Of a stretch of 49,581 bases of DNA, positions 17,646 through 22,713 are shown one piece after another. Position 1 is the first letter of the stretch. Each line of letters starts with the position of its first letter. The stretch comes from Chlorokybus atmophyticus (Eukaryota; Plantae; Mesostigma and Chlorokybus algae): NCBI GenBank assembly GCA_009103225.1, contig RHPI01002119.1, forward strand, positions 439,723-489,303. Reading direction: 5' to 3'. A model generated the notes under the pieces. That model made no database searches. It worked only from the letters and a program-made list of their open reading frames with translations, and was not told where the DNA came from. A program made the translations under genes and the position numbers.

Positions 17646-17692
17646 AGCTGTGCTATGCTGTGCTGTGCTATGCTATGCTATGCTATGCTATG
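17646..17692. repeat. (TGCTA/TGCTG)n pentanucleotide microsatellite
   Basis: Read directly. Confidence 0.9.
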
Positions 17693-18164
17693 GTGTGTTG
17701 TGCTTTGCTGTGCACCCTTATCACCATTCTATGGTCGTACATGTTCCTTAAATGCATCTGCCTCCCGCGACCACATCACATTATGCAGTTGGTGTCAAGT
17801 AACTGCAGGTTTCGTCTACAGTAGCAGGCGAGCAGAAACTGGTTGACTTTGCCTAGGCAACCATGTCCACTGACCAGCACAGTAGTCAGTAATACGCCCA
17901 AACCACAGCCACTGGCATAAATGAGGCTACGCTGTGTGCACTCACAAACGTGCTAATTATTTGGAGACCGCATGGCACTCATGCGAGCATCTGCATTGCC
18001 AGTGTACACGGACATACACAACCCACCAGTGCATAAAACTGTTCACAAGTTAACCAGAGACACTGTGGCTTAAACAGCAATGTCAAGCCAGCACCTGACA
18101 TTGCCTGAACTTGGGCGCTTGCATGCGTACTTGCTATGCATGCAAACCGCCTTTGATGCTCAGC

Positions 18165-21100
18165 CTACAACACCCTCTTGTAGCTGGAGTACTCCTTGCC
18201 ATCGGGCTTCACCAAGCGCAAGACGCGCACGGTGCGTGGAGGAACATTAGCGACAAGCAAGCCACAGTGCACAGGCACCAACACCTTGGAACCCCCTTCT
18301 CCAAGTTCATCCTGTAGAAAAGCGCCGTTCATGATCTTGGACTCTCGAACAGGCACTGTCTCAGTGACTTCTTCGTCGGTAGGGTTTGCCATCACGATGA
18401 CCATCTCTTCAACAAACTCCGTGCGACGCATGAAAGCGAGCAGCCTCTCACTGTCCAACAACCGGAAGTCGCCTATGCGCAAGGCGCGGTTGCTGTTGCG
18501 CAGTGCTATCAGCTTGCGCATCCACTGCAGATGAGGGTTGTCATCTGTGAACTGGTCCCACTCCATGGGACCCCTTTGCTCTGGATCTTCTCCACCCTGT
18601 GACATGACAAACATGAGGATCCAAGTGCTGTCTAAGAGAACATGTGCCTATCATCCACCATGCGGACAAAAAATGGCAAGCGGTAATCCCTATGTAATGT
18701 TGTTACCTAGCTAACTTACCTCCATGCCAAGCTCAACACCTGCAAAACAGCCAACGACACATCAACATGTCTTGTTGCTGTGGTCTTAGGCAGCACAATA
18801 ACAGCCATGCTAGAACATGTACCGTAGTAGATGCATGGCGAGCCAGGTAAGGTGAACTGTAGCACTTGAGCCATCCGCTCTTGCCATTGGTCAGGGAGGG
18901 AAGTTCTATGCACACACAGAGTGTTAAGTTGACATCTGACGGTAACTATAACTCATTTTACAGAAACATGCAGTTGAGCTACTATGTAGTGTACCTGAGA
19001 CGGGACACATCATGATTATCAAGCACCAGCCAGGAGCGCAACACGGGTTCCAACCCAGCATCTTGAATCATGCGGTCCAGTAGTCGGCCGGCATGGGCGC
19101 CAGAGATCACGTCCTTGACGAGGAACAGAATTACTTGCCGAGCGTACATGTTGAGCATTGCATCCAGTGATGGGAACCACTCCTCCGGATAGTTCTGCAT
19201 AGGAAAGCTGAGAGCTCAGACTAGAATATCATCCATACATGTGCCCCTCCCCCCCCCTCCTACACCACTTTGGGTAGAACGCACGTGAAATGCAACGGCA
19301 GTGGCAGAAGTTACCTACCCAGACTTCGCCCAGAACTAATGAACCTGGCTTGCAGGAGTGCGCTGAGGAGTAAAATGGTGACATGTTAGCTCTCAGAAGC
19401 GTACAAGATAAAATTGATGTGCTGAGTGCTCTCCACCCTTTCCCCATGCGTGAGTGTGCATATGGGGTACTCAGGCAAGCGATCATGGCAGCTAGAGGCA
19501 AGTGTGACCAAGACTCAACTCACCTGCGTCTGTCAGCTGCCGCAAGTAGTTGAACCCAAGATCAAACGCGACGTCCAAGCGCCAGCCATCCACTCCGTCC
19601 CTCAGGTACCCCTGCCATGACACACCGTCTGTCACCAGCGCAAGAGCATAGCACGTAGTTTCATATTGCTTAATACGTCAGTTGGCCCTGAGTTGTAACA
19701 AACCTGAACAACACTATCTGGATCACCATAAATACAGCCGCGCAGCTCAGGGTCCTCCATCCGTAACTCAGGCAAGTTAGCAGCATTGTACCAGGCCCTG
19801 CGATTACCAACATTGATCACTTCTGAACATGCGGCAAACCATGCCTTGAAGCTTACAAAATGAGACACACACCTGTAGCCCAGCTTGTACTCGTCATCAA
19901 TGAAGAACCACTTGCGGATCTTGCTGTTGGGATCCGCTAAAGCCGCTTGAAACCATTCAGAGTACTGGCCAACGTGGTTGAACACGCCATCAAGTACCTG
20001 GTGAACAAGCACCTGGCGTTATGCACCTGCACAATGCTAGCGTTGGCTTTACTGCTTGTTTCAATTTCAACATGCGCATTTGGTGCGGACAACTTATGCA
20101 CTCACCAGTTTCATACCAAGCCGATGGCATTCATCAGCCAGCTCAATCACATCTTCTCGTTTGCCAAACTCAGGGGATACGCTGAAGTAATCAAGGGCGT
20201 CATACTTGTGGTTTGTGTAAGCCAAGTGAATAGGGTTCAAGTACACAACGTCGGCTCCCAGGTCTTTGATATAGTTCAGTCGGCTGCGTAAGCTCTGCAA
20301 ATCCCCACCCCAAAAGTCAATCTCATGGCTCCATACGCCTTCCTCTTCCAGATACACACCTGATGCATGTACACCTCAGTCTGTGCTTCATACTTTACTG
20401 TGCTCGCATGCAAGTGCTTACATGCCATGCACAGGTAGACCACCTTGGCGTGGCTTTTCAGACCAATCCCGAAGCTTCTTCGGATCAGGGTAGAGGTCTC
20501 GCTTTGTTTCTAGATCCTCCGAGGGAGCAAATCTGTCCACCAAAACCTGCCCACCATCAACATGTAGCCTAGAAACATGATGTGACACAACACAACAACT
20601 GCAATCACGTGAGCAGATGTGACTAAACCTGCCTGATAAACTATGGCACCACTACGCCAGTCCTGCTCGCGCGCGCTATACACGCTAGCGCGCTGCAGGT
20701 CGTAGTCGTTAGCATACAGATCAAAGTCATTGTTGTCTGCTGGAGTCGAGTCCGAAGCGATTTCTTGTTCTGCAACAGCGCGTATGGCCAGGTCTCTGCC
20801 CAGTTGTGCACGCAGGCCACGTTGCGTCGTCCTGCAATATCAGAGGTCTTCATCAGGTCACAAGCACTGCCAGCTAGCGTGTCATTCCAATGGATGCAAT
20901 AAGAGCCTCTGCAGTGGTGGCTGCTGGTACTGGAGTCAGAAGTGATACGCAACTTGTGTATACTGGCAGGCATAACAAAATCAATATCAGGAACTCCTGC
21001 TGATCTGTCATTGACCCCAGAACACAATATGCAATATGCACATTCCACTCAAGAAACTGCTGGGACGGTGCGTATGATATAGGGCTTGGCACCCAGCGTG

Positions 21101-21702
21101 CAAGCACTGCTGGCAAACATGCTAACGCTGAACAAGCTCTTTCTTGTCACATTCCTCGCGCTATGACACTGTCATCTGCATGCAGAATATCTGAGCAGCT
21201 TCGTAATGCCAACGAGTTGGGCACATTGCAAACCCACCACAATATGCTTGCCATGTATGATGGGACGAGGACACGATAGCTACCTCAAGGGCTCAACCCA
21301 CAACAACTATGGACGCCAGAAAAATGAGACATCGATGGCATGCGGGGCATGAGGGCATCTTGCATGCACGGGCACACCTTGCATGCAAGCATGGACATTG
21401 TGCCAGGTGTTTGTGGTTAGTCGGCGTTTGGGTGTGCTGGTCTAGGCGACGTATTGCGACAACTAAATATTGTTGCCAAGCAGAAAAGGCCCTGACAGAC
21501 ACACTGCCTGCACCAAACACCTGCACAGCTGCCAAGCAGCAACAGCCCGCTTCATGTACCAGACTTACTACCTGAATGCACAGCGCTGCCTGGGTCGATC
21601 GGCCAGCCCCAGTGACCGCCTCGCTCCAGTACTAATCAATGACGCCTCGGTCGCACTGGGCGCCACCAATGCCACCGCCGCCGCCACCATCGCCATGGTC
21701 AT
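18165..21702 (-). CDS. GH13 alpha-amylase family, neopullulanase/cyclomaltodextrinase-like, with N-terminal plastid transit peptide-like extension; about 12 exons
   Basis: DWRSGAIVYQ|VLVDRFAP, FWGGDLQSLRSRLNYIKDLGADVVYLNPI, TNHKYDALDY, LDGVFNH, NLPEL, DGWRLDVA (nucleophile), LGEVW (acid/base), LDNHD, LPGSPCIYYG|VELGMEG|GEDPEQRGPMEW. Confidence 0.92.
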
Positions 21703-21736
21703 AGCCACGTGGTGCTGCCACAGCGTCTTTGGCTGC

Positions 21737-21746
21737 AAACCCTAAA
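21737..21746 (+). promoter_or_regulatory. Telo-box (AAACCCTAAA) between the GH13 and OTU starts
   Basis: Exact motif 35 bp upstream of the GH13 ATG. Confidence 0.45.
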
Positions 21747-22713
21747 TTGGTCCAAGTTTGCAGGAAATTTCGTCCAAGTCTGAGTCTAAGTCTTACAGGC
21801 ACACACAGACAAATTATAATTGATCTCGTGCCAACCTGGCATTCCCTTTTGCGACAGATTGCTGACGCGTCGTAATGCATTGAGGCTGTACCAAACAGAT
21901 TCAGGAATCTTCTGGATTCCACCGTGCGGTGGAAATTGAAGCAAACAAACAAAAGGAAAGCGTGCGACGCAACAGCAAGCACGAACCACAACCGCTGTTC
22001 CGGTATTGTCCCCCGTGCAGGATGAATCCAAAATGCAGAGCAATCCCTAAAACGTTTCATGGGTGCGTCATTACAACGCAAACGTAGGGTCTATGAATAG
22101 CACAAGAAAAGGACTTGCCACAAGCAGTAAAGCAGTCGGGATTGTCCTCGAAAAATAAAAAGCAGGACCATCAGGCGCAGAGAGTGACGTGGGCACCCGT
22201 AGCGGCGGCGGCGGGTGTGGCGGCAGCGGCGGTAGTGGTGTTTCGACTTGTAGTTGGATTGCAAGGATTCTTAGGTTGCCCTTTCAGCTTGCGGGTAGCG
22301 GTGCTGTTGGAGTGGTGGAACTGGTGAGCGCTGTGTGCGCAGCTGGCATTGCGGGAGAGTGTCAAGCGGCAGGTCACTGATGGCGTCAAGTTTGCTTTTG
22401 TTGCTATAGGCCGGCAACCTGTTTTAAGTATGTCGCATGGATTATATGTTTTGCTTGAATCGGCACTGGACTCTGATCGAACTTCCTGGCACTGACTGGA
22501 CTGCTGCTGCTGCTGTTTTGCTGTGCAGGTTGACGTTTTACATGCTAGTATCGCCTCACAATCATACTAAGGGAGCTTGATCTGGCTACCCTAGTTTGGG
22601 TTGGGCAGTCTTGCCCGCAGTATGGCTACTACCTGCAGACTGCGTTGTTCGTGCTTAGGCACTGCTATGACATGCTAGATCACGCCCGACCTTGTCTTGC
22701 TGCCGGCGCTAGC

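Follow-up and report, generated by a model that had tools for sequence, protein, structure and literature searches.

Structure of the GH13 gene

The window analyzed here is a stretch of 49,581 nucleotides (nt) from the alga Chlorokybus atmophyticus (contig RHPI01002119.1, positions 439,723 to 489,303). On its minus strand, at positions 18165-21702, lies a gene of glycoside hydrolase family 13 (GH13) with a coding sequence of 12 exons and 11 introns; joined at the splice sites, the exons total 1773 nt and encode an enzyme of 590 amino acids (aa). This is very probably an expressed nuclear gene of Chlorokybus for an alpha-glucan hydrolase of the AglB/cyclomaltodextrinase/maltodextrin-glucosidase type, which came from bacteria through an old horizontal transfer. 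Across the region 18100-21800, collinear open segments carrying GH13 motifs are distributed over all three minus-strand frames. Ten of the introns are GT-AG and one, intron 2, is GC-AG; all except intron 1 are between 75 and 161 nt long. The parts of the locus, in the direction of transcription, are as follows.

17896-21747, minus strand: transcribed region, seen as one spliced contig of 2088 nt (sequencing run X1) comprising a 5' untranslated region (UTR) of at least 45 nt, the coding sequence, and a 3' UTR of about 270 nt
21572-21702, minus strand: exon 1, start codon and residues 1-44 of the N-terminal extension, MTMAMVAAAVALVAPSATEASLISTGARRSLGLADRPRQRCAF plus R
20832-21571, minus strand: intron 1, 740 nt, phase 2, GT-AG, between the presequence exon and the remainder of the gene
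20633-20831, minus strand: exon 2, last part of the basic extension, which reaches about residue 62 (IRA/VAEQE), then an acidic linker and the onset of the region conserved with bacteria, LYANDYDLQRA...DWRSGAIVYQ
20547-20632, minus strand: intron 2, 86 nt, GC-AG, skipped in all four sequencing runs
20444-20546, minus strand: exon 3, VLVDRFAP...KPRQ
20106-20359, minus strand: exon 4, WSHEIDFWGGDL ... NHKYDALDY, matching PF00128 with 70 bits
19873-19997, minus strand: exon 5, conserved region I, LDGVFNH
19704-19797, minus strand: exon 6, equivalent of region V, NLPELR
19524-19611, minus strand: exon 7, conserved region II, GWRLDVA, with the codon of the nucleophile D315 at 19573-19575
19319-19362, minus strand: exon 8, conserved region III, GEVW, with the codon of the acid/base E344 at 19325-19327
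18995-19194, minus strand: exon 9, conserved region IV, LDNHD, with the codon of D408 at 19009-19011
18823-18905, minus strand: exon 10, ...LPGSPCIYYG, its upstream junction 18905/18995 seen in transcript contigs
18720-18739, minus strand: exon 11, a micro-exon of 20 nt, VELGME
18165-18596, minus strand: exon 12, end of the barrel and the C-terminal beta domain, conserved EYSSYKRVL, and the stop codon

Within the 590-aa protein, IVYQVLVDRFAP occupies residues 107-118, WSHEIDFWGGDL residues 154-165, NHKYDALDY residues 194-202, and LDGVFNH residues 231-237, followed by NLPELR (278-283), GWRLDVA (311-317), GEVW (343-346), LDNHD (404-408), and PCIYYG (436-441). An earlier note on this DNA, here called the original prediction, had listed a catalytic triad and a set of signature motifs, every one of which was located in the spliced protein. 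Its estimate of about 11 introns became exactly 11 in the spliced model and the transcripts, and the spliced N-terminus reads CAFR|TTQRGL, just as had been proposed. Because the transcript carries an in-frame TAG 42 nt before the ATG, the ATG at 21702 is the first possible start codon.

The public gene model jgi/Chlat1/7058/Chrsp56S06722 (protein P0235, 587 aa) agrees with the spliced model at 587 of the 590 positions. The sole difference is the absence of VYQ at the exon 2/3 boundary (region 20547-20641), where the public model chose a GT donor 9 nt upstream that has no transcript support. The GC-AG form of intron 2 restores these residues, and IVYQVLVDRF then fits the bacterial consensus IVYQVxVDRF. 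The locus thus corrects the public model, from which a miscalled GC-AG intron had removed three conserved residues.

Transcription and splicing

Four sequencing runs (X1 to X4), from a set sharing about 36% of its words with the 3.5-kb stretch, were aligned to positions 17800-22100 and gave contigs lacking the introns. Run X1 contains the 2088-nt contig listed above, which is intron-less, extends from the 3' UTR at 17896 to the 5' UTR at 21747, and has 4 mismatches to the exons. A contig of 1831 nt from a separate study (X2) has the same junctions, as does an orthologue, approximately 5% diverged, in X3 and X4. The junction 20830/21571, across intron 1, is present in X1 and also, with diverged flanking bases, in X3, which places the N-terminal exon on the same message as the catalytic exons, a join on which the original prediction had staked itself. 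As the 86 nt of intron 2 are skipped in all four runs, only the GC-AG solution fits there. Between the pieces at 18595 and 18995, X1 and X2 carry about 104 letters, which corresponds to the lengths of exons 10 and 11 summed, and across the region of micro-exon 11 the alignment to bacterial proteins is uninterrupted. The gene is transcribed and spliced as modeled, in contigs from two studies.

One extra contig in X4 has a noncanonical joint at the usual 124-nt intron 8, with 102 nt skipped (AG..AG, 19205-19308). Alternative or aberrant splicing may account for it, as may an effect of divergence on the alignment.

Enzyme family and predicted fold

Using Pfam, P0235 was found to match PF00128 with 171.1 bits (cutoff, 22), with single exons giving 70 and 23.5 bits, and to have a sub-threshold match to Malt_amylase_C. 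The catalytic residues D315 (GWRLDVA), E344 (GEVW), and D408 (LDNHD) are intact, and H407 (LDNHD) and H237 (LDGVFNH) are also present; the catalytic and histidine columns are invariant or nearly so across 67 homologues. Among curated families the best match is NF041090, the AglB-type cyclomaltodextrinases, at 447.1 bits, below the 540-bit equivalog cutoff. The same model gives 403.7 bits for the homologue from Mesostigma viride (P0304) and 470.2 bits for the closest bacterial relative (P0002), both likewise below 540. Individual exons, each taken alone, match NF041090 collinearly, and exon 12 by itself reaches 101.6 bits, alongside a weak match to Malt_amylase_C. The second-best NCBIfam family is the maltodextrin glucosidase MalZ (262 bits). 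The GlgX, pullulanase, GlgB, and alpha-amylase models gave 0 to 50 bits against the 447 for AglB, in agreement with the original prediction that the protein differs from the canonical starch GH13s of plants.

An AlphaFold model built on the 67 homologues had a mean predicted local distance difference test (pLDDT) score of 89.7, with residues 1-76 below 50, a rise past 90 at about residue 78, and residues 78-587 mostly above 95. The predicted fold consists of two short helices, a (beta/alpha)8 barrel, and a C-terminal beta domain, without an N-domain. Foldseek returned TVAII, TVAI, neopullulanase, MalZ, and the acarbose hydrolase Apg as the best matches, all of them GH13 enzymes, with template modeling (TM) scores of 0.62 to 0.72 and, for this group, identities of 25 to 30%. 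By sequence, the best matches in the PDB were 1EA9, 1J0H, 1SMA, and TVAII (approximately 200 to 209 bits, 25 to 30% identity), in alignments that begin at chain residues 164-169, past the N-domain of those enzymes.

Comparison with known enzymes places the protein next to, but outside, the characterized families. It resembles the Thermotoga-type ("TMG") cyclomaltodextrinases of NF041090 (Cyc-maltodext_AglB) in aligning end to end, over profile positions 13-470 of 470, and in an architecture of approximately 470 to 500 residues that lacks the N-domain; it differs in its score (447 against 540 bits) and in an identity of about 36% to a Thermotogaceae homologue. The Thermotoga enzyme is reported to release glucose from the reducing end. 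With the neopullulanase subfamily (cyclomaltodextrinase 1EA9, neopullulanase 1J0H, maltogenic amylase ThMA 1SMA, and TVAII 1BVZ), which we take to be CAZy subfamily GH13_20, it shares conserved regions I to IV, the C-domain, and TM scores of 0.68 to 0.72. The identity is 25 to 30%, however, and the algal protein lacks the approximately 120-residue N-terminal dimerization domain, which in these enzymes caps the active site of the partner in the dimer. Its region V reads NLPELR, the consensus of the bacterial clade being NLPEL, where this subfamily has MPKLN, reportedly its region V signature. The starch GH13s of Viridiplantae (alpha-amylase, isoamylase, pullulanase/limit dextrinase, and branching enzyme) share the superfamily, the catalytic mechanism, and alpha-glucan substrates with the algal protein, but none of these plant-type families is among its close matches.

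Judged from its sequence, the protein is of the cyclomaltodextrinase/maltodextrin-glucosidase type, in a sister family to AglB that lies outside the AglB equivalog. It is likewise assigned a place outside the classic neopullulanase subfamily by its lack of the N-domain and by LPELR in place of MPKLN. The neopullulanase-type label of the original prediction did not survive these two differences and the AglB-type (sub-cutoff) best match. By the retaining double-displacement mechanism of GH13, the enzyme would hydrolyze alpha-1,4 maltodextrins and perhaps also cyclodextrins or short branched glucans; these substrates are suggested by its likeness to characterized enzymes and by the linkage of Burkholderiales homologues to malF/malG permease genes. 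Weighing against this assignment, the relatives from which the substrates are deduced are at most about 36% identical (Thermotogaceae, AglB-like) or 25 to 30% identical (PDB), and 447 bits falls short of the AglB equivalog cutoff.

Bacterial relatives

With the last exon as the query, a full HMMER scan covering 1.84 billion cluster representatives gave 202 matches in all. The best full-length match in this set was P0002, with 63% identity over residues 83-589. Its gene is intron-less and lies on a 23.9-kb contig beside genes for LpxI, a MacB-type ATP-binding cassette (ABC) transporter, and resistance-nodulation-division (RND) proteins, a setting that identifies P0002 as bacterial. Word searches of a database that takes in EukProt and NCBI nr, seeded with P0002, P0235, and P0304, found thousands of proteins each, and the best 120 of each were listed. 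The best 120 matches of P0235 are all bacterial except for Mesostigma P0304, and the search with P0304 gives a similar picture. Taxa named among these matches are Phycisphaerae, Phycisphaerales, Tepidisphaeraceae, Sumerlaeota, Telluria, Pseudoduganella, Paraneptunicella, Inhella, and Burkholderiales. The nearest relatives among the best 120 come from Phycisphaerae (Planctomycetota), Sumerlaeota, and unclassified metagenome-assembled genomes (MAGs), with 60 to 66% identity, the best reaching 63 to 66%, and Burkholderiales form a neighboring subclade at 50 to 55%. The original prediction had seen a resemblance to proteobacterial proteins: the pattern it quoted, WRxGAIVYQVxVDRFAP...WSHEIDFWGGDL, is indeed the consensus of the bacterial relatives, but the nearest of these are the Phycisphaerae, Sumerlaeota, and unclassified MAG sequences, with Burkholderiales further away.

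A scan of species-representative genomes identified at least about 16 close relatives; it added, at 47 to 55% identity, sequences from Phycisphaeraceae, Planctomycetota, Pelomonas, Rubrivivax, Rhodoferax, Comamonadaceae, Ozemobacteraceae, Kofleriaceae, and Chthonomonas. In the ESM Atlas, the nearest clusters shown were 98 to 100% bacterial. The bacterial GH13 clade to which these relatives belong (P0168, P0171, P0182, P0002, and P0169; Phycisphaerae, Sumerlaeota, Tepidisphaeraceae, and Burkholderiales) is uncharacterized and annotated as [quoted passage not shown] The algal protein and this clade share 60 to 66% identity over approximately 500 residues, a span bounded by the pre-barrel helix WANxYDxQRA and the C-terminal EYSxYKRV, together with the domain layout, the catalytic residues, and the motifs IVYQVxVDRFAP and WSHEIDFWGGDL. 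Unlike its bacterial relatives, which are 500 to 545 aa long and have either no leader or a lipoprotein or Sec signal, the algal gene has 11 introns, a host-like G+C content, and about 76 additional residues encoded at the N-terminus. Lipobox or Sec signals were seen in several close bacterial homologues (P0169, P0248, P0229, P0267, and P0002).

In Pelomonas (L010, 431-4500), the homologue lies directly downstream of genes for MalF-like (with a P2 domain) and MalG-like ABC permeases, an arrangement that suggests a maltodextrin utilization operon. Loci L011 and L014 have the same layout of open reading frames (ORFs) as L010; for these two the likeness is one of layout, the Pfam scan having been limited to L010. 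The Rhodoferax homologue follows another GH13 gene, and the neighbors on Phycisphaerae-type contigs were uninformative.

Fragment matches of 110 to 250 aa that start at Met458 were considered as exons of other algae and rejected: they come from short metagenome contigs with bacterial-type neighbors (HDOD/PilZ, split GH13 ORFs) and are partial or broken bacterial genes. Among the short ENA metagenome contigs L003-L005, the best match to the last exon, P0001 (61% identity), is a 227-aa ORF with a second GH13 ORF ahead of it on its contig; a frameshift or an error of assembly seems to have split a bacterial homologue there.

Phylogenetic position and horizontal transfer

In a FastTree phylogeny of 185 full-length proteins, both algae fell within a bacterial clade of 145 rows (Shimodaira-Hasegawa-like [SH-like] support, 98), with Chlorokybus and Mesostigma as sisters (SH-like support, 95). 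A careful IQ-TREE analysis of 48 rows under LG+G4 placed both algae inside clades supported by 100/100 and 96/93; the enclosing clade is a polytomy, in which Mesostigma pairs weakly with P0207 (85/97). Quick trees under the C20 mixture had both algae in clades scoring 99 and 95, with their placement inside these clades not settled. When the tree was rooted with a Thermotogaceae AglB-like sequence, the algae were still deeply nested. The nesting of the algal proteins within bacteria is robust; the original prediction had regarded grouping with a broad eukaryotic GH13 clade as fatal to its proposal, and the trees place the protein inside a bacterial one.

The coding sequence has a G+C content of 54.6%, and 62% at third codon positions (GC3), against 65 to 67% and 85 to 92%, respectively, in the close bacterial homologues, and the composition of the gene matches that of the host genome. 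In diverged Chlorokybus lineages the gene is present and its junctions are unchanged, the one minor noncanonical joint in X4 excepted. An old transfer of the GH13 gene from a bacterium to the alga is well supported, and this part of the original prediction, which had also proposed intron gain and an added N-terminal extension, is borne out by the nesting in a bacterial clade, the 11 introns, and the host-like G+C content. After the transfer, the gene would have gained introns, undergone compositional amelioration, and had its N-terminal extension added.

Distribution in eukaryotes

The only other close eukaryotic homologue among the best 120 matches is M. viride Mesvir1/23578 (P0304, 556 aa), with 57 to 59% identity to the Chlorokybus protein; the two also have top bacterial matches and a bacterial subclade in common. 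In contrast to the Chlorokybus protein, the P0304 model lacks the N-terminal extension and has insertions of 21 and 14 residues (alignment columns approximately 474-494 and 583-596) that occur in no other homologue. The insertions may be unspliced introns, and the missing extension may reflect a truncated 5' end of the model.

Dinoflagellates have homologues of 41 to 46% identity, namely, P0037 (Polykrikos kofoidii), P0050 (Durusdinium trenchii), and P0033 (from a EukProt transcriptome), all three of which have long N-terminal extensions. P0050 (824 aa) was left out of the trees as too long. P0033 groups with P0037 in a separate clade distant from the position of the algae, and this clade may represent a separate acquisition from bacteria. 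A search of the literature on cyclomaltodextrinase in dinoflagellates found nothing relevant.

Several other origins have to be set against the reading of an old transfer from bacteria. Bacterial contamination or an assembly artefact has nothing more in its favor than the high similarity to bacterial proteins, and it is refuted by the 11 spliceosomal introns with their splice sites, by spliced transcripts that come from two studies and also from sister lineages that have diverged, and by a G+C content that is host-like and far under that of the bacterial homologues. It is very unlikely that the gene is ancestral in eukaryotes or in the green lineage, or came from the cyanobacterial ancestor of the plastid, and was lost nearly everywhere. 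The AglB-like GH13s of dinoflagellates and one ESM Atlas look-alike cluster (rank 11) that is mostly cyanobacterial would fit such a history, but the dinoflagellate proteins are distant in identity and two of them in clade, and among the best 120 matches of either algal protein there is no cyanobacterial sequence and no Viridiplantae protein beyond the two algae. The strongly supported position among Phycisphaerae and Sumerlaeota sequences also argues against it. Within the horizontal-transfer reading, the most parsimonious course is that the transfer would predate the split of Chlorokybus and Mesostigma: published species trees place the two genera as sisters, and they have their top bacterial matches in common, which makes one transfer more parsimonious than two. 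The approximately unbiased (AU) test did not reject algal monophyly (P = 0.20), and the densely sampled FastTree phylogeny joins the algae. Weighing against a single transfer, the sister relationship appeared in FastTree only, the IQ-TREE trees leaving the algae unpaired, with Mesostigma either beside P0207 or unresolved. Furthermore, one rare residue is common to both algae, where random bacterial pairs of similar identity have a mean of 1.3, whereas Mesostigma has 7 to 8 such residues in common with P0207 and P0309; each alga is also nearer to bacteria (Chlorokybus up to 66%, Mesostigma up to 63%) than to the other. These observations would suit independent acquisitions by Chlorokybus and Mesostigma from related bacteria, a course of events that is possible but that we consider doubtful, given the AU test, the FastTree pairing, the common bacterial matches, the kinship of the genera, and the length of both algal branches (0.5 to 0.8). 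More divergent homologues in other green algae are a further possibility that counts against the main reading, as the best 120 matches reach only to about 52 to 54% identity and more divergent green-lineage copies would lie below that level.

N-terminal extension and predicted localization

Alignment with the bacterial proteins starts at about residue 80, at LYANDYDLQRA. Residues 1-76, which precede it, form a disordered extension (pLDDT below 50) that is absent from all bacterial relatives. Residues 1-62 comprise 23% Ala, 16% Arg, and 15% Ser plus Thr, with 3 acidic residues and a net charge of +7, whereas residues 63-100 are acidic, with a net charge of -7. The break falls at IRA|VAEQE, so that the boundary proposed in the original prediction coincides with a change in composition from basic to acidic. 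Being disordered, poor in acidic residues, rich in Ala, Arg, Ser, and Thr, and additional to the prokaryotic proteins, the extension has the composition of a transit peptide.

The sister lineage represented by X3 differs at 30 of 142 bases in the presequence exon, plus indels, against 4 to 7% in the catalytic exons; between Chlorokybus lineages, the presequence exon is 4 to 5 times more diverged than the catalytic exons. In the presequence exon the listed indels add up to 3 nt, and so do those in the linker. A targeting peptide followed by a linker would be expected to evolve fast in this way while largely keeping its reading frame.

On the basis of these features, the chances are about even that the extension is a plastid-targeting peptide, the plastid being the most plausible destination because alpha-glucan turnover in the green lineage occurs there. 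Against this stand the hydrophobic character of residues 3-14 (mean Kyte-Doolittle hydropathy, 2.65), which are followed by PSATEA/S and could serve as a signal peptide for the endoplasmic reticulum; the Arg-rich segment, which is compatible with a mitochondrial presequence as well; the Mesostigma model, which has no extension; and the many bacterial homologues that are exported as lipoproteins or Sec substrates. The last of these makes a secreted role possible. Under such a role, the gene would have the same transfer origin, and its product would enter the secretory pathway, destined for the cell wall, the extracellular space, or the vacuole, and scavenge external alpha-glucans, which is probably what the exported bacterial homologues do, with the N-terminus as a signal peptide. 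The hydrophobic stretch (AMVAAAVALVA), with small residues at -3 and -1 in the P-S-A-T-E-A/S that follows, and the lipobox or Sec signals of the close bacterial homologues named above are what this proposal would explain. However, residue 20 is followed by a 42-residue stretch with 24% Arg, a net charge of +8, and almost no acidic residues, which is unneeded for a plain secreted protein and typical of organelle presequences; many green-algal transit peptides begin with an uncharged Ala-rich stretch, and in a green alga the substrates of the enzyme are probably located in the plastid. We therefore regard a secretory location as improbable, though not negligibly so, and a mitochondrial or dual location as somewhat less probable again; what likelihood is left after the plastid, secretory, and mitochondrial predictions belongs to an extension without a targeting function.

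Significance

Mesostigma and Chlorokybus together form the earliest-diverging streptophyte lineage, and the transfer of carbohydrate-active enzymes from bacteria to streptophyte algae is a recognized theme. The gene described here, a bacterial gene for a carbohydrate-active enzyme that is now interrupted by introns in a streptophyte alga of an early-diverging line, is a new case within this theme, and a well-documented one: it has gained introns and an N-terminal extension, its composition has been ameliorated, and its expression is confirmed. A search of full-text literature found no paper that describes it.

The gene also bears on alpha-glucan metabolism, a pathway in which the enzymes of the green lineage are generally regarded as a set unchanged since primary endosymbiosis. 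Were the product plastidial, the earliest-branching streptophytes would degrade starch-derived maltodextrins partly via a noncanonical bacterial enzyme. The most far-reaching account combines one transfer from a Phycisphaerae- or Sumerlaeota-like bacterium to the common ancestor of Mesostigma and Chlorokybus, retention for hundreds of millions of years, a plastid transit peptide on a separate exon in Chlorokybus, and a plastid maltodextrin/cyclodextrin hydrolase absent from all other green plants studied; as a whole, we put this forward only tentatively.

Surroundings of the gene

A Pfam scan of the neighboring long ORFs in the window gave no match. On the 3' side of the gene, approximately 190 nt past the end of the transcript contig at 17896, lies an imperfect pentanucleotide microsatellite, (GCTGT/GCTAT)n, of about 55 nt (17649-17705).

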